64,000 nt of DNA from Diadema antillarum (lineage: Eukaryota), in contig NW_027270890.1 of the NCBI RefSeq assembly GCF_040938485.1, forward strand, positions 6,572,001 through 6,636,000. The letters are read 5' to 3'. A program made the position numbers and the translations under genes. The stretch's first letter is position 1. Every line of letters starts with the position of its first letter. Below are positions 19,083-61,698 of this stretch, in pieces. The notes beneath the pieces were generated by a model. That model did no database searches. It was not told the origin of the DNA and saw only the letters and a program-made list of their open reading frames with translations.

Positions 19083-20177
19083 ATGGACGTGGTACCGGTA
19101 TCGATTAACGAGGGTCTTGCTACAATGATGACAGACGAAATAAGTACGAAATTCACTCCGGTGAAGACACAGGGCAGTGGGTGGCTGTGGAGTGTGCAAT
19201 GGTCCTGGACGAATTCCATTCAGCTGATTTTTGCTGTGGTTGGGATTGTCGGCAATCTGCTCGTGATTCTTGCCTTGTTGAGACGAAAGGCGCTACGACA
19301 CTCGACAGATATCTTCATAGGTGCTCTGGCTCTAGCCGACTTTCTGACATCGGTCGTGATGATCCCTGTCCCACGGGCCCAAAAGGTACCCGACACTATT
19401 GCCGGTGCCTTGTACTGCAAAGTGGTGTACCCGAGCTATCTGATGTGGGTGTTCATCTTCTCGTCCGCCTACATCCTGGCGGGGATGTCCATGGAGAGGT
19501 TCGTTGCGGTAGTGTACCCACTACATTTCAACCGGCTCTTCACCAATACCCGAGTTTATGGCTACCTGTTCATCGTGCTCGTATGTGCCATTCCCGCTGC
19601 GGGGATCACCATGACTTTGCAGGTGATCGACGACGAATGCCGAGACACGAAGACAGCTCAGCTGAGAGTAGACTTGTCGATCTACCTCTTTACCTTCCGC
19701 GTTGCTGTTCCCGTGTTAGTCATGGTGATAACGCAGGTAATCACTACCATTTCACTTCATCGTCAGTCCAAGCAGCTCCAAGGAGCTCGCTCGACGTCGA
19801 AGGCCGACGCCCCCTCCTTTCACCTCACGGCCCGTAACCGCATAGTGAAAATGACGATGATCGTGGTCATCATCTTCGTACTCAGCCTCGGGCCGAATCA
19901 ATTGATGACCATGATTGCGGCTGTGAGGGGCACCCTGTCTACATTTTTGTTCAGTCCTTTGTACTACACCCTGACTTTCCTAGCCTTCGTCAACTCGTGT
20001 GCCAATCCCTTCATCTACGCCGCAAGATTCCCGAAATTCCGCAAAGCAGTGAAGGACATCTTCACGTCTGGTTTCTCCCGGAAGAACCTGCCGTTATTTG
20101 CCAACGGAGAGCAACCGTCTAACATGATGGCGTCAGAAAAAGACACTTCCTTATCCACTGTGTCCCAAGCGGTGTAA
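19083..20177 (+). CDS. Orphan class-A (rhodopsin-like) GPCR, copy 1, 364 aa, single coding exon; peptide-receptor-like (galanin/allatostatin-A/somatostatin-like by general appearance)
   Basis: Seven hydrophobic segments. GN in TM1, LALAD in TM2, TM3 Cys (LYCK), ERF at the DRY position, ECL2 Cys, P in TM5 and TM6, NSCANPFIY in TM7 and a basic helix 8. Confidence 0.95.
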   Translation: MDVVPVSINEGLATMMTDEISTKFTPVKTQGSGWLWSVQWSWTNSIQLIFAVVGIVGNLLVILALLRRKALRHSTDIFIGALALADFLTSVVMIPVPRAQKVPDTIAGALYCKVVYPSYLMWVFIFSSAYILAGMSMERFVAVVYPLHFNRLFTNTRVYGYLFIVLVCAIPAAGITMTLQVIDDECRDTKTAQLRVDLSIYLFTFRVAVPVLVMVITQVITTISLHRQSKQLQGARSTSKADAPSFHLTARNRIVKMTMIVVIIFVLSLGPNQLMTMIAAVRGTLSTFLFSPLYYTLTFLAFVNSCANPFIYAARFPKFRKAVKDIFTSGFSRKNLPLFANGEQPSNMMASEKDTSLSTVSQAV

Positions 20178-26330: not shown

Positions 26331-27741
26331 ATTATGAGGAATAAATGCGTCAGTCATCAGTGGTGAAAGGTCAAAGGTCAACAATTGAAATTTCAGGGAT
26401 TATGTCTGCTTGTGTTTCAATGTAAACCTATGACATTTTCCTCTTGTGTATGACTACATTGTACGAATGAAATACCTCTGAACTTCCACTGTTGTGTATA
26501 GAAATAAGGTATGGAGAAAGAAAAAATCAAGGTATCATTAATAACTCATCACGGAGACTTCTCTTTGTTTTCTTTCTCTTTTTGTCTCTTTCTTGGAAAT
26601 TATAATTGTTATAATCTGGGCAACAATCCCGGCCCCCACTCAAGTGGTCATCTGTACCGTATCTGCGGACCCGATTTTTTTTTTTTCGGGAAAAGGGGTA
26701 TTATCTTAAGGTTTCAATTCGGTGAAAAAAGTCCGAAAAATCATTGGAAATATAGTGGTCTTGTAGCATTTTTTTTAAAAACACCATGATATCCTCTCCG
26801 AATTACACAAACGTCATCAGTATACATCTGTTTACCTTGTGTCCCCTCAAACTGCATTACTACTTTGTTCTTTCAAGCATTGATGACAGTTTTGTTTTAA
26901 TGGTTCAGCAGAGCGTTTTTAATAATTGTAGAACGTTCACAATGCAGAAAATAGTGTCGTATGGCATAGCAATAATAAATATCATTAACACCAAATATAC
27001 ATCACACCACTCCCACCTGTTAATAAGAAAATTACAATGATATCGTTAGACAACCTCATTTATATACATAAAATCGTGGATGTGAATTATTATGTATACA
27101 TTTACTACGCAAGTATATATTATGAGTTGATTATGTTATATATGAGTAAATTACTTGACACAATGATTTAAGTGTTACAAATATACGTGATTGCCTGATA
27201 CCTTTGCGTTGTGACCGTTTGGGTCAGATATTCAGAAGATTATAAAGGATAAATCAAGAAAGCCCTACCATCTTCAAAAACCAAAAGAAAAACAAAAGAT
27301 TTGACATATCACAACTCAAAACTTGGCCAACTGGAATCGCTCATCTTGGACGACCGCGTGCACCATTCGAACGTGAGCCATGTCAGACTACAGTGTGAGG
27401 AGCTAAAGTATGCGTTACGATTTTTGTTTTGTATAATTTGGATGCAAACTGGCGTACTGTCTTGTCGATCGTTCGAGAAATGTTTCGCATTTGCTAGCGG
27501 TTCATTGAGTTTGGCAAAGGTACGCAGGGTTCCAAAAACACTTTTTAACACTTTTGAACAAAACAACCATGGAGCTACATGATTCAACCAAAGGTAGGTA
27601 GATGTTTGTTTCCACTTTCGAGGGGAAAAGAGTATGCAATTTAGATACGCATACGTTTAATAGCTAAAGACGCTGTAGTGTGACAGGTCCTCAACAGGTC
27701 TGGACTCCTTCAAAGCCGAGGTTGTAGGGCGTCTACGGAGC

Positions 27742-28337
27742 TTAAACTGCTGGAGGCGTTGTTACACTTACACCAGGCTTGTTCTTGCCGCGTCTTGATC
27801 CCTCCCGATGTCCCTGGCTACGTCCCAGAAGATTACGTAGAGGTTGGTTTCTTCCTCGGTGCTGACTTTGACCTCCCATCTGATTCCGTTGTCGTCGGTG
27901 AGGTCGAGACTGATTATGACTAGCTCCGTTACGTGGTGCCTGGTTCGGATCTTGCTGACTATGTTCCGGCTGACTATGTCCTTGTCGACCTGCTCCAAGA
28001 TGGTCACGCCGCTGCTGATTGCTTCCAAACTGACGATCTCCTGGTTGATTTCGTGGCCGATGAATGCGTCCTGTCTGGTTTCGCCCCGAGTCATTGTCAT
28101 CTGGCTGATTTTGACCTTGATGATGAAGAGGTAGTTCGACACTCAAACTTCGTCCTAGTCCTCGGCGATCCGTCTGGCTGCCTCCTGACCTATCGCGTCC
28201 TGCTTCATCTTCTACTTGCTCCCTTGGAGCCTTTGAGTTCTGCTGATTACGTCGTTCTTGATATTTTCCTGGCTCTATAACTTCCAGCTGGGTTCGGCCT
28301 TCTTGATCTCGTGTCTGTTGATTGTTTCCGTGAGAGT
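27742..28337 (-). CDS. Uncharacterised secreted protein, coding exon 3 (596 nt, terminal): Q/R/G/N/H-rich disordered tail ending KPGVSVTTPPAV*
   Basis: Acceptor ttttgtcaattgcccAG, phase 1 (A|AC), one open frame of 198 codons to TAA, and GC-rich coding-like composition. An alternative donor GGT|GTAAGT near 27772 cannot be excluded. Confidence 0.8.
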
Positions 28338-28764
28338 CTGGGCAATTGACAAAAATTTACGGAAAATTTGATCTGAGGTAACATGTTTCTTACACACACA
28401 TCTTGCAGCAAATCATTAAGACTTTCTTTCTTGCGTACAAACTGAATATTATTGATATTAGTTTCAAATTTATGTAAATAATTATCATGCAAACAAATCT
28501 GCAAATCTAATTTATCATGGGATTGTAGTGAATATGTATACACAAATATGTATATATATTTTATTCAATAATCATGGAAAATAATGTAAAGTGATTCATT
28601 AAACAAACAGAAGCTCCTTAACTTTAAGCAGAGCTTGTAGCCATTGTAGAAAATGAATAATCTTCTCGGATTCAAAGAATGGTAAAGAGAAGGAGGAAGG
28701 TGCAATGTTTTGTCGCACTGGTATGATAATGATTAATCATGCACTCACGAGAAATGTATTTCTA

Positions 28765-28955
28765 GGTTCCATGACATTTTCTCCTACGCTAGACATAAAT
28801 TCTACCCACAAGCACACGCGTAATCCTAACCCTATATAATCCTAATCATCAAACTAAACCTAAAATCCTATCACAACCCTAACCGTTACCATGAGACCCT
28901 GGAGAATATAAGACCAGAGCAATCATACTCTTGCAGGAGCAGATGACATGTCACT
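28765..28955 (+). mobile_element. Dispersed repeat with degenerate (CCTAAC) runs and ggagca-containing ends
   Basis: gacattttctcct...cctaaccctatataatcctaa...aaccctaacc...caggagcagatgacat. Ends are approximate. Confidence 0.45.
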
Positions 28956-29635
28956 GTATTTCTCATTGCTATATGTCTTGATGATTAATAAAATCGAAAG
29001 GATGACAGAAATCATGATGTTCTGGATGAATGAAGAGTTAGCGGAAATGAGTGCTTTTCGATGATTGGATGATTACATAAGATTTTCAGGTTTGAACGTC
29101 ATACAATTAGCGTCTTCCCCAAAATGGAGAGAAACCGACGCGTCAGGTGAAACGCATTAATAAATGTGCTCCCTGGAATTTCAGTAGTTTTGTTTTGGTA
29201 GTTGTTGTTGTTGTCCTGTTAAGTTATCTGTTAGTTTATGCAGCAATAACAGTTTAGCAAACCTATAAAAATACAAAGTACTAGTGACCTGTCTATTGAA
29301 GTAGTTAAACATGGAAAAAATACTGGGAATTTCATCAAAATCATATGATTGAATTCTTTACAGAAACAAACATGAAAAGTCAACCTTTTCTTTTATTGAA
29401 GTATTTAGTTTTTATTGCTTGAATTACATGAAATATCCGCACACCGTCACAGTTCCATATCTTTTGGTTTTACTGATTTTAAATGAGAGATGATTGGTTT
29501 GAAGGCATCGATTATAAATAGTTCTTGTTAATAGACACGCTGATAGACATGTTTGCATTATATCGCTGTAAAATGATATCTAGACCCAGGATCGCAGGAG
29601 ATATTCTAAATGCACACTAAAAAAGACCCCCCCCC

Positions 29636-29677
<42 letters not shown>

Positions 29678-29786
29678 GCACACAAAACACACAAAATAAA
29701 ACAAAACAAAACAAAAACAAAATCAAGACAAAACCACCAAAAAAACCCAACCAAATAACAAACCAAAAGTCCACAGGAAAACTTAC

Positions 29787-30110
29787 TGGAAACGTTGGAT
29801 TCCATGCACACCCTCAATCGATGCAGATTTCTGTAAGTACACGCAAAGTGCAAAATCTCACAGGTGTTGTTGAAATGTGCTGTCCTGTCATTACGGCAAA
29901 CCCTGTCGGCGCCGATCCGGTCGATCTCTCGGTTTGCCTCGAGGAAGTCAGCGACGAGCTGCCCCAGGGCTTCCTTGGAGCAGTCCTCCTTGTACTCGGG
30001 GGGAGCATTCAAGAACTCCTCGCAGACACTTCCCTGCTTCACGATCCTCCGAAATCCAGCCAACATCCTCCTAGGCTGGCCGTTTGGTCTGTTCTGAGGA
30101 GGGGGACATG
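29787..30110 (-). CDS. Uncharacterised secreted protein, coding exon 2 (324 nt, phase 1-1): Cys-containing Kazal-like domain
   Basis: Acceptor ctcctgcacAG and donor A|GTAAGT. Translation: ACPPPQNRPNGQPRRMLAGFRRIVKQGSVCEEFLNAPPEYKEDCSKEALGQLVADFLEANREIDRIGADRVCRNDRTAHFNNTCEILHFACTYRNLHRLRVCMESNVS. Confidence 0.85.
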
Positions 30111-30435
30111 CTGTGCAGGAGTTTCAAGCAGAGTTGGATCCATTTTACCCCATTGCTTTCGTTAAAGGGTGACTAAGCTCTATGCCAATTGTTTGTATGA
30201 ACACCACAAAGTAACAGAATATGAGAGAGATTGGATCTCCGACTATATGGGGTCCCGGAATTCATTCTGATTGTACGCACACAAACTGTTATGGTTAGAC
30301 ATAGCAAGAGAGAAAAAAATAAAACAGAGAGAAAAGAGAGAGAGAGAGAGGGAGGGGTGGAGACAGAGATGCAAGTTTTAACCTCAAAGAAAATACATTA
30401 CAATTACTTCAAACGATAGTAAACATTGCACTTAC

Positions 30436-30496
30436 CGTCTCCACCAAGCAGAAGGCTTAGAAGCAGGATGCTCTCAACAAATATAACCACCTTCAT
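30436..30496 (-). CDS. Uncharacterised secreted protein, coding exon 1 (61 nt): signal peptide MKVVIFVESILLLSLLLGGD(A)
   Basis: ctctcttcctcAG|ATG and donor G|GTAAGT. Hydrophobic h-region with small residues at the -3/-1 positions. Phase 1 matches exon 2. A non-coding upstream exon is implied. Confidence 0.85.
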
Positions 30497-33400
30497 CTGA
30501 GGAAGAGAGCAAGGAATAGACATGCATGACTGTGTAATCCATTTCATCTAGATCTGTCGTCATAGAGAAATCTTACTGGAAATGATGTCAGAGTATATTT
30601 CCCGGAGAATGTTCTGATTTTCCGTAGTGCTAATTGCTCACTCCCTCGCCTTGAATCATGTTCAAACAAATAGAAAGAAAGAACAAATCTTTCTATCAGT
30701 TTGTTGACTCGTGGAGTAGACCTAGATAGACTCCACAACGGAACATCATTACCTTCACTTCATTCCAAGATGAAGAAACGACAGAGTAAACTGACCACGT
30801 TGAATACATACCATGAATATTGTGGTGCCACCTTAAAACTTCGAAGCTGCCGTAAAAGCGATAGTCCCCATTAAAAGCAAAAAGATACTATACTAACCTT
30901 TCCGACTGCATAAACCGACTTCCGAGCATTCTTTGACGATGCGAAACAGTAATTACATTATGTAGAAAAGTATCAACATCTGAGTAATATATCAAATAAT
31001 TCTTTACTTCCTATCAGAGGCAGAGAGAAGGACATTATAATTCCAACTCCCACCATGTGTACCTGGTTGCATGGCTTTGACAATTACATAGGGCCTGGGA
31101 GACGTCCACTCTGATTCTGTTGACAAAATGTTCACTGTTATTTTCATCTAATTTTGCATGTTTTTGTCCATTTCAAACAATTGCAATACGATTATACATA
31201 ATAGAATGCCAAAAGAAACTAGTACAAGCTATAGCAGAATTGCCTGTAAAGGTATCAATCAACACATAGTTTTCCTACAAAAACAGTAGGCCTATTAGTC
31301 ACATTTTTTCTTTACAGAAATAGCAGAAAAAAAGATGACGCCATCACAGTTTGTTTTTACGTTTAGTCAAGATTTACAGTAGCACGGAATGTTAATTGTC
31401 ACATATCGAATATGAACTCACCATTCTCCGTGTGAATGACTGCGTGCTTGGTCGAAATGGTTTCTCATGGACAACGGATAAGTTGATCCATCAAAAACTC
31501 AACTTTGATGGTAACTCTCTATGCGTTGCGCTTGACTCATGTGTACCTCCTTTCACGTTGCAGCTCTATTAAATACGAGCTCTGATTTTCCATATGTAGA
31601 CGATAACGAAACAAGCAGAGTCAGTGTGAGATACAGCTAGAGGTGAATGTTCAAAAAACAGAACAGAATATCGCCAACCACAATCATGGTGAAAATGAAA
31701 ACGTGGCATTGATTAATTTCTCCACAAAAAGGTTGAAAGATGTTGGTTGCTAAAGGTGGGGGGGGGGGGGGGAGGGTGGGCACCAACGCCCTCGTCAGCA
31801 AGAGCTGGTGTTTATTGTGCGCTGTAAAGTCGCATTGCAGGATGAATTAATTGTTCTGTCAATTAGCAGATACATTTGAACAGTCAATATGGTAGAAATT
31901 TAGGGTGATTAATGACCATGCCGCGACGTATTTCTACAGGTATATTCCATATGGTATGGAGTTAGAGACCTTTTTTGTTCAATCATCCTTTTGCTTTTTT
32001 TTTTTGGTTTATTTTGGGGGTTATACGATGCTATAATCATGTCATTGTTTGTATAACACAGTGTTATGAAAGATTTCAAAGAGAAAGTATACTTGGCTTT
32101 AAATAGTGGTACAAAAACGTTTTTAAACATCCTTGTTTGCCGTATTGGGGTCTTTGCACAGAGAGTTCTGCTGGATCAGAGTGTCATGCGGCCAGCTAAA
32201 TGCTGTAGTCAAGCATCGACAAAAGATAAAACACAAACAAACAAACAAACAAACAAACAAACAAACAAACAAACAAACAAAGTGATTTCAACCGGATTTC
32301 ATTTCATGATGCATTGATGATGACTTGGATGATCATTCATACCCCAATACTGTTGGTGTGTGTTAAGAAATATCGCATTTTATCTAAGCTTTGACCAGAG
32401 ACTTGCCTTTTGACAGGATACCCATGTTATATCGGCAGAAATGAGTAATTACCGATTAACTACCATGAAAACTAACTTGAACAAGATATAAAGAGACAAT
32501 TTGAGGGCGTTATGACAGCAATATCATTATAGAGGGATGATCACTGTTCACTTGCTTACAAAACAACCGGTCGTTTCTGTATCTATATCCGACATGTAAC
32601 CTGATCGCTGTCTGTCTGTCTGTCTATTCATCCATTTATCTTTCCTTTATCCCCACTGGGATACTTATTATTCTACATCAAACATAATTCATATTCACCT
32701 GAACACAAAATACATCACAATGTTTCAAATAACATCATAATATTTTGAATAATATCTTATTTATCTAAATAAGATTTTATTTATCTACCTACCCATCTAT
32801 CTGTCTCTCTATCTCTCGCTGGTCATGCATCATGGATGAGCATAGAGTCTTTAAAGGTATTGTTTGCCATTGGAAACAGTGATTAAAAAAATGTTTGAGT
32901 TATCACATTTGATGCATCCCTATGTTTAGGTCAGTTGCATCATAAAGGATCCAACCATATAAAGATTCGCAATAAAGCCTAAAATATGAGATGATATCAC
33001 TATTTTTCAATAAACCGTAACTGTAGACAGTTTATTCTAGAAACAATCTTATCATAACTATTCTTCACATTTTGTATATTTAACAATACTTGACATCGAT
33101 TGTAATGATTACAATAACATTGTTACATTGGTTGTTTCTATCCCTAACTGACATTTTCAAACTATTTTTTAAGCACTGAAACTGGGTTTTTGTTTCATCT
33201 GCTAATGAAAAAGAATTGCATGTTATTATTATTTTATATATACCGTATTGTGATATATTGCAAATATAACACAACTTGAAGATTGAATATACACATATAA
33301 CATGCAAAATATGTTTTTCGGTAATGATATAGGCCTACCAGTCAGTGTGATGGTTTTGATAGTTATAAGTTTAGAATCTTAAGCTGTAGCTTGTTTGTTT

Positions 33401-43174: not shown

Positions 43175-44290
43175 ATGGAACCGCCAACGCATGCTGATAA
43201 TTCTGGCACGCTGTCATACACAGCGATGACAGTTGAAGTGGATACGACAGAGGTTGCCATAGGAACCCTTCCAAGGCTCCAAGAGGAGACCAGTGAATGG
43301 ATGTGGAGTATGACCTGGTCCTGGACAAGCCTGCTCCAGCTGATGTTTTCATTGGTAGGAAGTGTCGGTAACTTTCTAGTGATTCTTGTCCTGGCCGGGC
43401 GACAGACGGCCCGGTACTCAATGGATGTTTTCATCTTGGCGCTTGCGGTGGCCGATTTCTTGACGTCCGTGGTAATGATCCCAGTTCCGATGGCTCAGCG
43501 CGTGCCAGATACCATTGCCGGTTCTTTATACTGCAAGGTGATATACCCAAGCTACCTGTTGTGGATATTCGTCTTCTCGTCTGCCTACATCCTAGCAGGC
43601 ATGTCCGTGGAGCGTTTCGTGGCGGTGGCATATCCTCTACACCGTCACCATGTCATCACGAAGCGACGAGTGTACATTTTCCTGGCCGTCGTTGGCATAC
43701 TTTCCATACCTTCTTCTGCTCATAATATCAAAGTTGAAGTCATAGGTAACAGGTGCCAGGACACAAAACCGATGAATGTGAAAATTGACATTGCTATCTA
43801 TCTTTTCTTTGCCCGCGTGGGTTTCCCCGTGCTCACCATGGTCGTTACGCAGGTCCTGACAGCCTTGGTTCTACATCGACAGCACAAAGAACTGAATAAC
43901 GTTTTGTCTGCTCAGAAAGGGGGTGTCCCATCCATCCACCTCACAGCTCGCAACAGCATAGTGAAGATGACCGCTACTATAGTAGCAGTTTTTATCCTGA
44001 GTCTGGGTCCAAACCACCTCATGTTAATGATAACAGGCCTTCGAGGAACCCTCGGATCGTATTTGTTCAGCCCTATCTACTACGTCTTTAACTTTCTTGC
44101 TTTCATCAACTCGACAGCTAATCCCTTCATTTACGCAGCTCGGTACCCTAAGTTTCGCACGGCCATCAAGGACGTCTTCACCAAAGGACTGTCCAAGACG
44201 AAGTTGCCACTTTTTGATCAGGCCATCGTTCACCGTTCGGGGGTTAGTACTCAGATTACCAATGCCTCCTCTGTGAGTGGCTTAATCTGA
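43175..44290 (+). CDS. Orphan class-A GPCR, copy 2, 371 aa
   Basis: 7TM with GN, LAVAD, ERF, SLGP and NSTANPFIY. Paralog of copy 1, roughly half identical in the TM core by eye. Confidence 0.95.
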   Translation: MEPPTHADNSGTLSYTAMTVEVDTTEVAIGTLPRLQEETSEWMWSMTWSWTSLLQLMFSLVGSVGNFLVILVLAGRQTARYSMDVFILALAVADFLTSVVMIPVPMAQRVPDTIAGSLYCKVIYPSYLLWIFVFSSAYILAGMSVERFVAVAYPLHRHHVITKRRVYIFLAVVGILSIPSSAHNIKVEVIGNRCQDTKPMNVKIDIAIYLFFARVGFPVLTMVVTQVLTALVLHRQHKELNNVLSAQKGGVPSIHLTARNSIVKMTATIVAVFILSLGPNHLMLMITGLRGTLGSYLFSPIYYVFNFLAFINSTANPFIYAARYPKFRTAIKDVFTKGLSKTKLPLFDQAIVHRSGVSTQITNASSVSGLI

Positions 44291-51334: not shown

Positions 51335-52456
51335 ATGCCAATGGAAGCACAAGCGCATTCAGATGCTTCTTACCCGCTTTCATACACAGCGATGATGGTA
51401 GACGTGGATACGACAGATCCTGACATAGTAACCCTTCCAAGGATCCCCGAGGAGACCAGTGAATGGGTGTGGAGCATGACATGGTCCTGGACAAACCTGC
51501 TACAACTGATATTTTCATTGGTAGGAAGTGTCGGTAACTTTCTGGTGATTCTTGTCCTGGCCGGGCGACAGACGGCCCGGTACTCAATGGATGTTTTCAT
51601 CTTGGCGCTTGCGGTGGCCGATTTCTTGACGTCCGTGGTGATGATCCCAGTTCCGATGGCTCAGCGCGTGCCAGATACCATTGCAGGTTCTTTATACTGC
51701 AAGGTGATATACCCAAGCTACCTGCTGTGGATATTCGTCTTTTCGTCAGCCTACATCTTAGCAGGCATGTCCGTGGAGCGTTTCGTGGCGGTGGCATATC
51801 CTCTACACCGTCACCATGTCATCACGAAGCGACGAGTGTACATTTTCCTGGCCGTCGTTGGCGTTCTTTCTATACCTGCTTCTGCGCATAGTGTAAAAGT
51901 TGAAGTAGTAGGCAACACCTGTAAAGACACAAAGCCAATGAAGGTGAAAGTTGATATAACAATTTATCTCTTCTTTGTCCGCGTTGGTTTCCCCGTGCTC
52001 ACCATGGTTGTTACGCAGGTCCTGACAGCCTTAGTTCTACATCGACAGCACAAAGAACTGGAGCACGTCTTGTCTGCTCAGAAAGGTGGTGTCCCGTCCA
52101 TTCACCTCACAGCTCGCAACAACATCGTGAAGATGACGGCTACCGTAGTAGCAGTCTTCATCCTCAGCTTGGGTCCAAGTAACCTGATGTTTATGATAGC
52201 AGGCCTTCGAGGAACCCTCAGATCCTATTTGTTCAGCCCTCTCTACTACGTCCTGAACTTTCTTGCTTTCATCAACTCGACAGCTAATCCCTTCATTTAC
52301 GCAGCTCGGTACCCTAAGTTTCGCACGGCCATCAAGGACGTCTTCACCAAAGGATTGTCCAAGACGAAGTTTCCACTTTTTGATCAGACCGTCGATCACC
52401 ATTTAGGGGTCGGTACGCGAATAACCAATGCATCCTCCGTGAGTTGCGTAATGTGA
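51335..52456 (+). CDS. Orphan class-A GPCR, copy 3, 373 aa (the real start may be the second ATG at 51341)
   Basis: The protein is identical to copy 2 from FSLVGSVGN to VYIFLAVVG. All 7TM motifs are present. Confidence 0.95.
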   Translation: MPMEAQAHSDASYPLSYTAMMVDVDTTDPDIVTLPRIPEETSEWVWSMTWSWTNLLQLIFSLVGSVGNFLVILVLAGRQTARYSMDVFILALAVADFLTSVVMIPVPMAQRVPDTIAGSLYCKVIYPSYLLWIFVFSSAYILAGMSVERFVAVAYPLHRHHVITKRRVYIFLAVVGVLSIPASAHSVKVEVVGNTCKDTKPMKVKVDITIYLFFVRVGFPVLTMVVTQVLTALVLHRQHKELEHVLSAQKGGVPSIHLTARNNIVKMTATVVAVFILSLGPSNLMFMIAGLRGTLRSYLFSPLYYVLNFLAFINSTANPFIYAARYPKFRTAIKDVFTKGLSKTKFPLFDQTVDHHLGVGTRITNASSVSCVM

Positions 52457-60576: not shown

Positions 60577-61698
60577 ATGCTAATGGAAGCACAAACGCGT
60601 TCAGATACTTCTTACACGCTTTCATACACAGCGATGATGGTAGAGATGGATACGACAGATCCTGCCATGGCAACCCTTCCAAATATCCCCGAGGAGACCA
60701 GCGAATGGGTGTGGAGCATGACATGGTCCTGGACAAACCTGCTACAACTGATATTTTCATTGGTAGGAAGTATCGGTAACCTTCTGGTGATTCTTGTCCT
60801 GGCCGGGCGGCAGACGGCCCGGTACTCTATGGATGTTTTCATCTTGGCACTGGCGGTGGCCGATTTCTTGACGTCCGTGGTAATGATCCCAGTTCCGATG
60901 GCTCAGCGCGTGCCAGATACGATTGCAGGTTCTTTATACTGCAAGGTGATATACCCAAGCTACCTGTTGTGGATATTCGTCTTCTCGTCTGCCTACATCC
61001 TAGCAGGCATGTCCGTGGAGCGTTTCGTGGCGGTGGCATATCCTCTACACCGTCACCATGTCATCACGAAGCGACGAGTGTACATCTTCCTGGCCGTCGT
61101 TGGCGTACTTTCCACTCCTGCTTCTGCGCAAAATTTAAAAGTTGAAGTCATAGGTAACAGGTGCCAGGACACAAAACCGATGAATGTGAAAATTGACATT
61201 GCTATCTATCTCTTCTTTTCTCGCGTGGGTTTCCCTGTGCTCACCATGGTCGTTACGCAGGTCTTGACCGCCGTGGTTCTACATGGACAGCACAAAGAGC
61301 TGGAAAACGTCTTGTCTGCTCAGAAAGGTGGTGTCCCGTCCATTCACCTCACAGCTCGCAACAACATCGTGAAGATGACGGCTACCGTAGTAGCAGTCTT
61401 CATCCTCAGCTTGGGTCCAAGTAACCTGATGTTTATGATAACAGGCCTTCGTGGAACCATCAGATCCCATTTGTTCAGCCCTCTCTACTACGTCCTAAAC
61501 GTTTTTGCTTTCATCAACCCGACAGCTAATCCCTTCATTTACGCAGCTCGGTACCCTAAGTTTCGAACGGCCATCAAGGACGTCTTCACCAAAGGATTGT
61601 CCAAGACGAAGTTGCCTCTTTTTGATCAGGGCATCGATCACTATTTAGGGGTTGGTACGCAGATAACTAATGCTTCGGCCATGAGTGGCCCAATCTGA
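60577..61698 (+). CDS. Orphan class-A GPCR, copy 4, 373 aa (the real start may be the second ATG at 60583)
   Basis: Intact ORF with 7TM motifs; TM7 reads NPTANPFIY. Confidence 0.95.
   Translation: MLMEAQTRSDTSYTLSYTAMMVEMDTTDPAMATLPNIPEETSEWVWSMTWSWTNLLQLIFSLVGSIGNLLVILVLAGRQTARYSMDVFILALAVADFLTSVVMIPVPMAQRVPDTIAGSLYCKVIYPSYLLWIFVFSSAYILAGMSVERFVAVAYPLHRHHVITKRRVYIFLAVVGVLSTPASAQNLKVEVIGNRCQDTKPMNVKIDIAIYLFFSRVGFPVLTMVVTQVLTAVVLHGQHKELENVLSAQKGGVPSIHLTARNNIVKMTATVVAVFILSLGPSNLMFMITGLRGTIRSHLFSPLYYVLNVFAFINPTANPFIYAARYPKFRTAIKDVFTKGLSKTKLPLFDQGIDHYLGVGTQITNASAMSGPI

Follow-up and report, generated by a model that had tools for sequence, protein, structure and literature searches.

Two described groups of echinoid proteins bear on the locus considered here. 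Transformer (Sp185/333) proteins are encoded by two-exon genes, in which a leader exon is followed by a single mosaic exon, and are not known to contain a Cys-rich folded domain. SM50-type spicule-matrix proteins are basic and combine a C-type lectin domain with G/P/Q/N-rich repeats. Sea urchin skeletogenesis ranks among the main models in which gene regulatory networks and biomineralisation are studied, yet many of its terminal effectors are still "uncharacterized". We analysed a stretch of 64,000 nucleotides from Diadema antillarum (hereafter the window; assembly GCF_040938485.1, contig NW_027270890.1, positions 6,572,001 to 6,636,000), in which three minus-strand exons almost certainly form a real gene for a two-module secreted protein, as judged by sequence comparison. 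The predicted protein belongs to a family defined by six Cys, which has no name, Pfam model or described function and which, across the libraries searched, appears confined to echinoids. Our favoured explanation, with a probability of roughly 0.4, is that the product is a secreted two-module structural or assembly component of an extracellular matrix.

Reading positions 27600-30700 on the minus strand gave three coding exons, with GT/AG boundaries at all introns (Table 1). The exons (61 + 324 + 596 = 981 nt) join at phase-1 junctions into a frame that is open for 326 codons plus a stop. A preliminary description of the window had given these exon coordinates, splice sites, junction phases and frame, and all were right on re-reading, as was its account of composition (a Cys-containing domain before the tail; an exon 3 rich in Q/R/G/N/H with one Tyr, one Phe and no Cys). 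The codon split by junction 1 encodes Ala, while that at junction 2 encodes Asn here versus Asp in Diadema setosum. A layout of leader, Cys-containing domain and tail, also proposed beforehand, was borne out, the leader being hydrophobic and the tail basic and disordered. The exon 1 leader has a grand average of hydropathy (GRAVY) of 1.79 and is a probable signal peptide, likely cleaved after ...GGDA, a site placed by inference; the exon 2 peptide comprises 107 residues with seven Cys and two N-x-S/T sequons; and the tail has an isoelectric point (pI) of 11.6. Exons were searched one by one, and the D. setosum protein described next served as a full-length stand-in.

When exon 3 was used in a word-indexed search of proteins, a single one was returned, XP_072166301.1 (P0001, 335 aa), an "uncharacterized protein" of D. 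setosum. This protein is collinear with all three exon peptides, without gaps across either junction; 18/20 residues of exon 1 are identical, and identity over exons 2 and 3 is 88% and 82%, respectively. The two species share three coding exons, their junctions, seven Cys and a basic NQ-periodic tail; the RefSeq model differs in starting 9 codons upstream, at a poorly conserved in-frame ATG, and carries no annotated function. By sequence, the window gene is the orthologue of XP_072166301.1. The gene had been called hidden in the preliminary description: it is real, but its orthologue already exists as a RefSeq model in the sister species, hence it is not new as a model, and its function has never been characterised. 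For genome annotation, this confirms as a real gene a locus already predicted in D. setosum.

Comparison of genomic sequences indicated that the coding frame is kept beyond chance. At the D. setosum locus (L021) all splice sites are kept and the exons have no indels; exons are 90-92% identical between species, compared with 72-88% for introns and flanks, where each high-scoring segment pair contains 1-44 gap openings. Summed over in-frame exon pieces (Nei-Gojobori), synonymous divergence (dS) between the window and D. setosum was 0.19 and nonsynonymous divergence (dN) 0.074, giving a dN/dS of 0.39, with per-exon pN/pS of ~0.30 in the domain and ~0.55 in the tail. A second copy on contig C8 of the same assembly is 94% identical to the window, introns included. 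Its splice sites are kept, exon 1 is identical, dN/dS relative to the window is 0.44, and the two copies differ by 54 gap openings in ~3 kb of non-exon sequence versus 0 in the 981 nt of exon (~18 expected). We considered this copy as a paralogue and rejected that assignment, given that the surrounding G protein-coupled receptor (GPCR) genes are collinear in mirror order and that other loci are also contig-paired. Four or five rhodopsin-type GPCR genes around the C8 copy show this mirror-order collinearity, the nearest being 99% identical, and on sequence grounds the copy is the second haplotype. Both haplotypes appear to be represented in the assembly, which comprises 1.75 Gb in 2963 contigs: near-identical contig pairs were observed for G000:C8:5296000-5350000 versus the window's own contig (C2), the GPCR cluster, most family paralogues and many Kazal loci. 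Genome copy counts are to be roughly halved.

These comparisons bear on whether the gene is instead a decaying duplicate, annotated yet non-functional or unexpressed, whose frame has survived by chance. Such a reading is compatible with the purely comparative nature of the support for the gene and with an exon substitution level between haplotypes (~2.6%) that is near the mismatch of the whole region (~2.9%). However, in three independent sequences, which span a divergence of ~0.19 at synonymous sites, the frame stays open, splice sites are kept and none of the seven Cys is lost; dN/dS is 0.39, and exons have no indels where introns have dozens. We therefore regard decay as very improbable.

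The exon 2 peptide contains a domain of ~85 aa whose six Cys (C29, C43, C71, C83, C90 and C101 of the exon 2 peptide) are invariant in 13 aligned sequences. The family spacing, read from the Cys positions, is C-x12-13-C-x21-31-C-x10-15-C-x6-C-x10-14-C, which the window gene fits; a seventh Cys, at the very beginning of the predicted mature chain, occurs only in the two Diadema orthologues. Searching the D. antillarum genome in six frames with exon 2 recovered weak matches of 28-36% identity that have the Cys pattern in common. A domain profile built from the window sequence together with three paralogues identified four loci, namely the window gene (E 1.4e-36) and paralogues at C236/C1211, C750/C443 and C26 (E 1e-28 to 1e-32); three of the four lie on two different contigs each, and the fourth consists of two copies on C26. 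Against 1.84 billion representative proteins the same profile gave nine matches at E <= 0.001, seven of which are family members (hmmsearch E of 1.3e-33 for P0001, 4.9e-23 for P0002, 8.4e-15 for P0004, and 1e-5 to 1e-7 for the others). P0003 and P0007 were rejected as members, being internal-repeat artefacts.

Pooling the profile matches, their cluster members and the results of a later word search yielded named members from D. setosum (P0001 and P0002, the latter XP_072162839.1), Strongylocentrotus purpuratus (LOC100889463, LOC115919110 and LOC105442046) and Lytechinus (LOC121411681, LOC129256533, LOC129256532, LOC129272308 and LOC121409570). All are echinoid and every one is "uncharacterized"; four more sequences (two from ENA, two from Logan) are of unknown source. 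Pfam gave no meaningful match for the exons, P0001, the paralogues or any of the 13 family members, and no family name was found in Pfam, PDB or the literature searched by LOC and XP identifiers. Nor did Pfam, PDB, or AlphaFold2 (AF2) modelling with Foldseek produce a clear match to a characterised family, in keeping with the initial suggestion of an undescribed secreted family. Sequence relationships thus point to the window gene being a divergent member, so far found only in Diadema, of a small unnamed family confined to sea urchins in the libraries searched.

Gene structure is shared within the family. The C26 paralogue has separate exons for leader, linker plus domain, and tail, with both introns in phase 1, and in the C236 paralogue three exons occupy the corresponding positions, its two donor sites both reading as phase 1. 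The exon plan common to the window gene, C26 and C236 supports common descent. The window gene and the members known at full length each have an N-terminal hydrophobic leader, a putative secretion signal. In S. purpuratus, P0004/P0010/P0011 (LOC100889463 and LOC115919110) contain linker plus domain twice, in tandem and nearly identical, as duplication of a symmetric phase-1/phase-1 exon would yield. A 16-kb contig in ENA (ERZ26222911; P0005 and P0008) carries two family domains ~300 bp apart that were called as separate open reading frames (ORFs), and probably represents a further urchin gene whose domain exons lie in tandem. In the second C26 copy of the acidic-tail paralogue (G000:C26:1067936-1068271; L005/L018/L019), the N-terminal part of the domain is duplicated internally; the segment ...SEEARANCTDAFLEGLTTRNKSR... 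occurs twice in one open frame, and this copy may be rearranged or decaying. In a maximum-likelihood tree, the window gene and P0001 share a very long branch that joins weakly (56/83) to the other Diadema members, those of the acidic-tail branch.

We next considered the fold of the six-Cys domain, which had initially been described as Kazal-like. A Kazal domain was taken to be defined by a Pfam match, a Cys2-Cys3 loop of 7-9 residues, the core VCGxDGxTYxNxCxLxxAxC and disulfides C1-C5/C2-C4/C3-C6. Neither Kazal_1 (PF00050) nor Kazal_2 (PF07648) matched the window exon, P0001 or any of the 13 members at E <= 10, even though at least 97 loci in the rest of the genome score above the cut-off of the Kazal_2 model; none of them is at this locus. 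The C43-C71 gap is 27 residues long and predicted to be helical, compared with 7-9 residues in the Kazal domains of this genome. There is a weak and partial resemblance: all six Cys are present, the last four being spaced C-x11-C-x6-C-x10-C with a VCxxD..F.N.C..L..AC motif as in Kazal/FS-Kazal domains, and the C-terminal part of the domain is predicted to have the beta-hairpin, helix and strand topology of a Kazal domain. An hhalign comparison with seven Kazal_2 domains from the same genome aligned 23 columns (VC..D..F..C..IL..C; pairwise E 0.0064) at a probability of 5.9%. A PDB profile search gave sub-threshold matches throughout, to the bc1 hinge protein (E 0.06, over the N-terminal helices), granulysin (E 0.1) and 1y1b (E 0.33), a non-classical Kazal elastase inhibitor from Anemonia; a PDB sequence search with exon 2 likewise returned only sub-threshold matches.

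Structural models were also built. With the 13-sequence family alignment, AF2 reached a predicted local distance difference test (pLDDT) of 76 and a predicted template-modelling score (pTM) of 0.64; a first run with six sequences had given a pLDDT of 60. The model places helices over residues 12-65, a strand at 70-72, a helix at 82-92 and a strand at 98-100. Compared with solved structures, its best Foldseek match in PDB had an E of 1.6 and its best VIA-align match a Z of 4.0, with no family prominent among the latter, and no Kazal structure was among the matches. In the ESM Atlas, the top cluster was acrosin-binding protein (ACRBP; PF07222), with a feature score of 0.80 and a template-modelling (TM) score for shape of 0.47 (by query, 82 residues, root-mean-square deviation 4.0), both in the range that the tool designates 'lead only'; an agrin-like Kazal cluster scored a TM of 0.39. 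The PF07222 model (PBP_sp32) did not match any family member at E <= 10. Matches to PF07222 elsewhere in this genome were set aside as artefacts of low-complexity E/K-rich ORFs: L034 (G000:C74:1001931-1002143), an E/K/G-rich ORF, scored over the curated cut-off of the model as a false positive, and the similar L035 scored below it.

Taken together, the domain differs from Kazal domains in the lack of any hidden Markov model match, in its long helical Cys2-Cys3 gap, in the helical nature of its N-terminal two thirds and in the lack of a match to a solved Kazal structure. The Kazal-like label fits at most the 23-column core, with its low hhalign probability and the sub-threshold 1y1b match, and we leave the domain unclassified: a disulfide domain whose core may be remotely Kazal-like. 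The protein could be imagined as a protease binder or inhibitor, in which a serine protease or zymogen is bound by the C-terminal part of the domain, a degenerate module of Kazal or ACRBP type, and the tail serves as an anchor. In favour of this, hhalign places VC..(D/G)..F..C..IL..C on the Kazal C3-C4-C5 core, 1y1b appears in the profile search, and PF07222 and agrin-like Kazal clusters appear in the ESM Atlas. Yet no member matches any of the three Pfam models, the hhalign probability is low, the Atlas scores are all leads only, Foldseek and VIA-align recovered no Kazal structure, and the 27 helical residues that separate Cys2 from Cys3 leave no canonical reactive-site loop. On this evidence, protease binding appears unlikely.

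The tail encoded by exon 3 (R30 Q29 G25 S16 N16 P14 H11, ending ...VSVTTPPAV) is strongly cationic, with a net charge of ~+14.5 and a GRAVY of -1.9. The dipeptide NQ recurs every 10 residues at tail positions 76/86/96/106 and 131/141/151, and Tandem Repeats Finder detected no DNA-level repeat in exon 3. There are five dibasic sites (residues 28, 57, 109, 147 and 181), an RRQR at 147-150 and three sequons. No relatives of the tail beyond the Diadema orthologue were found in the D. antillarum genome (E <= 10, where only the locus and its C8 copy matched), in the word search or in the Atlas, whose model of the D. setosum orthologue at full length has a pLDDT of 0.39. Tails of other members either consist of a furin-type RxRR followed by an acidic Ser/Asp-rich, Thr/Pro-rich segment (pI 4-4.8) or are short and basic.

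An alternative, which widens the Transformer-like idea of the preliminary description, is a cationic host-defence effector: a rapidly evolving, lineage-specific secreted protein whose R/H/G/Q-rich tail would bind microbial surfaces. The charge, the 11 His and the lack of an aromatic core are consistent with this, as are the lineage restriction and long branch, the weaker constraint on the tail than on the domain (pN/pS ~0.55 versus ~0.30) and the difference between haplotypes at ~5% of residues. However, the tail is uniformly hydrophilic rather than amphipathic, and searches found no similarity to Sp185/333 or to a known antimicrobial family. Diversifying immune genes typically have both dN/dS above 1 and indels, whereas here dN/dS is < 1 and the tail has no indels between species; the family's sole expression data, moreover, point to skeletogenic cells. 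An immune role is therefore quite unlikely. The dibasic sites raise the further prospect of a prohormone-like precursor, from which proprotein convertases would cut at the five sites and RRQR to free small peptides, and relatives do have R-x-(K/R)-R directly after the domain (RQRR, RKRR, RRRR). Against this, the cleavage sites do not bracket repeated conserved peptide units, a recurring Gly-Lys/Arg amidation pattern is missing, the expression lead in the family points to mesenchyme rather than to neural tissue, and furin-site cleavage after the domain fits maturation of a matrix protein equally well. We consider a prohormone highly unlikely.

The expression lead comes from LOC121411681 (P0016) and LOC115919110 (P0011), which were reported as an "Uncharacterized" mRNA enriched in primary mesenchyme cells (PMCs) and lowered specifically by the VEGFR inhibitor axitinib (PMC13200730, Development 2026). 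In that study, single-cell RNA data gave a log2 fold change of 7.34 for PMC enrichment (51% versus 1% of cells), the axitinib effect was a log2 fold change of -2.68 (adjusted p 1.7e-12), and the values adjoin those of p58a and P19L in the ranked list (PMC13200730). Other family members were absent from its supplements, and by LOC and XP identifiers the family is mentioned in the literature only there, such that functional evidence concerns the Lytechinus/Strongylocentrotus branch alone. Because these relatives are transcribed specifically in PMCs under VEGF control, we consider a skeletal or matrix role the most likely. By analogy, the family's role would be extracellular and is probably in the skeletal matrix; for this particular paralogue, a matrix or biomineral role is a tentative extrapolation. 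The biomineral matrix role guessed at initially thus gains indirect support from the PMC-enriched, VEGF-dependent relative (PMC13200730).

According to the favoured matrix explanation, the leader would be cleaved and the exon 2 part would fold into a compact, disulfide-stapled domain, with a helical hairpin as its N-terminal part and, as its C-terminal part, a beta-hairpin and helix resembling a Kazal core. The seventh Cys, at the mature N-terminus, would be left free for covalent pairing. Exon 3 would contribute a disordered tail with a strong positive charge, made up of degenerate decapeptides in which N, Q, R, G and H abound; its binding partners would be polyanions, for example acidic matrix proteins, sulfated glycans or the surface of mineral. 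In this copy, the basic tail would take the place of the acidic Thr/Pro-rich tail usual in the family.

Several observations weigh against this explanation. Support for the gene comes from sequence comparison, and both the signal peptide and the disulfide pattern are putative. The PMC-enriched relative is only ~20-25% identical in the domain, and its branch has an acidic tail with a furin site where the tail here is basic, from which it follows that function may have changed. The window gene also sits on a long branch with weak placement (56/83), and no orthologue of it was found in Strongylocentrotus or Lytechinus.

A broader proposal can be framed, which we regard as doubtful. The six-Cys domain would define an undescribed echinoid family of proteins secreted by skeletogenic cells, carried on a phase-1/phase-1 exon to which different tails (acidic mucin-like, short basic, or long cationic decapeptide) have been swapped, and the basic-tailed Diadema copy would be a lineage-specific matrix-assembly factor. 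If this were true, that copy might pair electrostatically with acidic-tailed relatives or with mineral and so help to shape the unusual Diadema skeleton. Independently of this proposal, the PMC-specific, VEGF-dependent effector LOC121411681/LOC115919110 is now tied to a definable domain family across echinoids, with a signature of six Cys, a three-exon plan and phase-1 introns, and family members are testable candidates for matrix assembly.

The start codon and flanking signals were assessed by comparison with D. setosum (Table 1). The D. setosum RefSeq model begins at the equivalent of 30523, 9 codons upstream of 30496, where identity between species is 3/9 codons compared with 18/20 downstream, and a 4-nt indel throws the 30547 ATG out of frame in D. 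setosum. Given this poor conservation and frame shift upstream, 30496 is the best-conserved start. The conserved TATA-like block may represent a core promoter and is put forward as a candidate. An ATTAAA at 27656-27661 was rejected as a poly(A) signal, as it is not conserved in D. setosum.

Table 1. Coordinates of the window gene and of its upstream signals, in window positions.
Feature	Position	Strand	Description
Coding exon 1	30436..30496	-	Met and hydrophobic leader, 20 codons + 1 nt; ATG at 30496; followed by GTAAGT
Intron 1, phase 1	30111..30435	-	GTAAGT...CACAG; splice sites kept in C8 and D. setosum
Coding exon 2	29787..30110	-	Extra N-terminal Cys (CPPPQ...), basic linker, six-Cys domain; CACAG before, GTAAGT after
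Intron 2, phase 1	28338..29786	-	GTAAGT...CCCAG; splice sites kept in C8 and D. setosum
Coding exon 3	27742..28337	-	197-aa Cys-free basic low-complexity tail; CCCAG before; TAA at 27742-27744
Pair of in-frame ATGs upstream of 30496	30523-30521 and 30547-30545	-	Downstream of TAG 30550-30548; probably 5' untranslated region
TATA-like AAATATA	30594..30600	-	Within block GGGAAATATAC, unchanged in window, C8 and D. setosum

Two other features of the window were recorded. Within intron 2, at 29636-29734, an uninterrupted (T)39 on the minus strand is followed by a G run and flanked by a TTTTG-type microsatellite, and errors of assembly or polymerase slippage are likely in this stretch. On the opposite (+) strand, four intronless ORFs of 364-373 aa (19083-20177, 43175-44290, 51335-52456 and 60577-61698) encode rhodopsin-family GPCRs (7tm_1, E 1e-34 to 1e-37) and form a tandem cluster, with more copies just past the window.

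Set beside the described systems, the window gene resembles Transformer in composition alone, in that its predicted product is secreted, echinoid-specific and of G/H/R/Q-rich low complexity. Unlike Transformer, it has three coding exons and a six-Cys disulfide domain. A word search with the tail yielded, from 79 candidates, only the Diadema orthologue and no Sp185/333 protein, and an Atlas feature search gave no usable match, these being indirect comparisons made without a direct Sp185/333 alignment. The resemblance to Transformer raised in the preliminary description was not upheld, given the different exon plan, the Cys domain and a tail search that led to the Diadema orthologue only. With SM50-type proteins the gene shares a basic pI, degenerate short repeats rich in N/Q/P/G/R (NQPG is present) and the combination of one folded domain with a repeat tail, but it has no Lectin_C Pfam match. 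As the tail matches nothing else in the genome at E <= 10, we read this likeness as one of composition and not of homology, SM50 sequences not having been compared directly.

The remaining comparison is with the family itself. LOC121411681 (XP_041460436.1, Lytechinus variegatus), LOC115919110, LOC100889463 and LOC129256533 (Lytechinus pictus) have a predicted signal peptide, a basic linker and the same six-Cys domain, the Cys spacing being invariant, and the Diadema paralogues that look closest to the PMC-enriched branch follow the same three-exon plan as the window gene. S. purpuratus relatives contain two tandem domains where the window gene has one. The PMC-enriched branch differs further, its low domain identity being accompanied by RxRR and a short acidic tail that is Ser/Asp- and Thr/Pro-rich (pI 4-4.8), whereas Diadema carries a divergent member with a wholly different, cationic tail, which illustrates the exchange of tails on a domain exon that is itself conserved.

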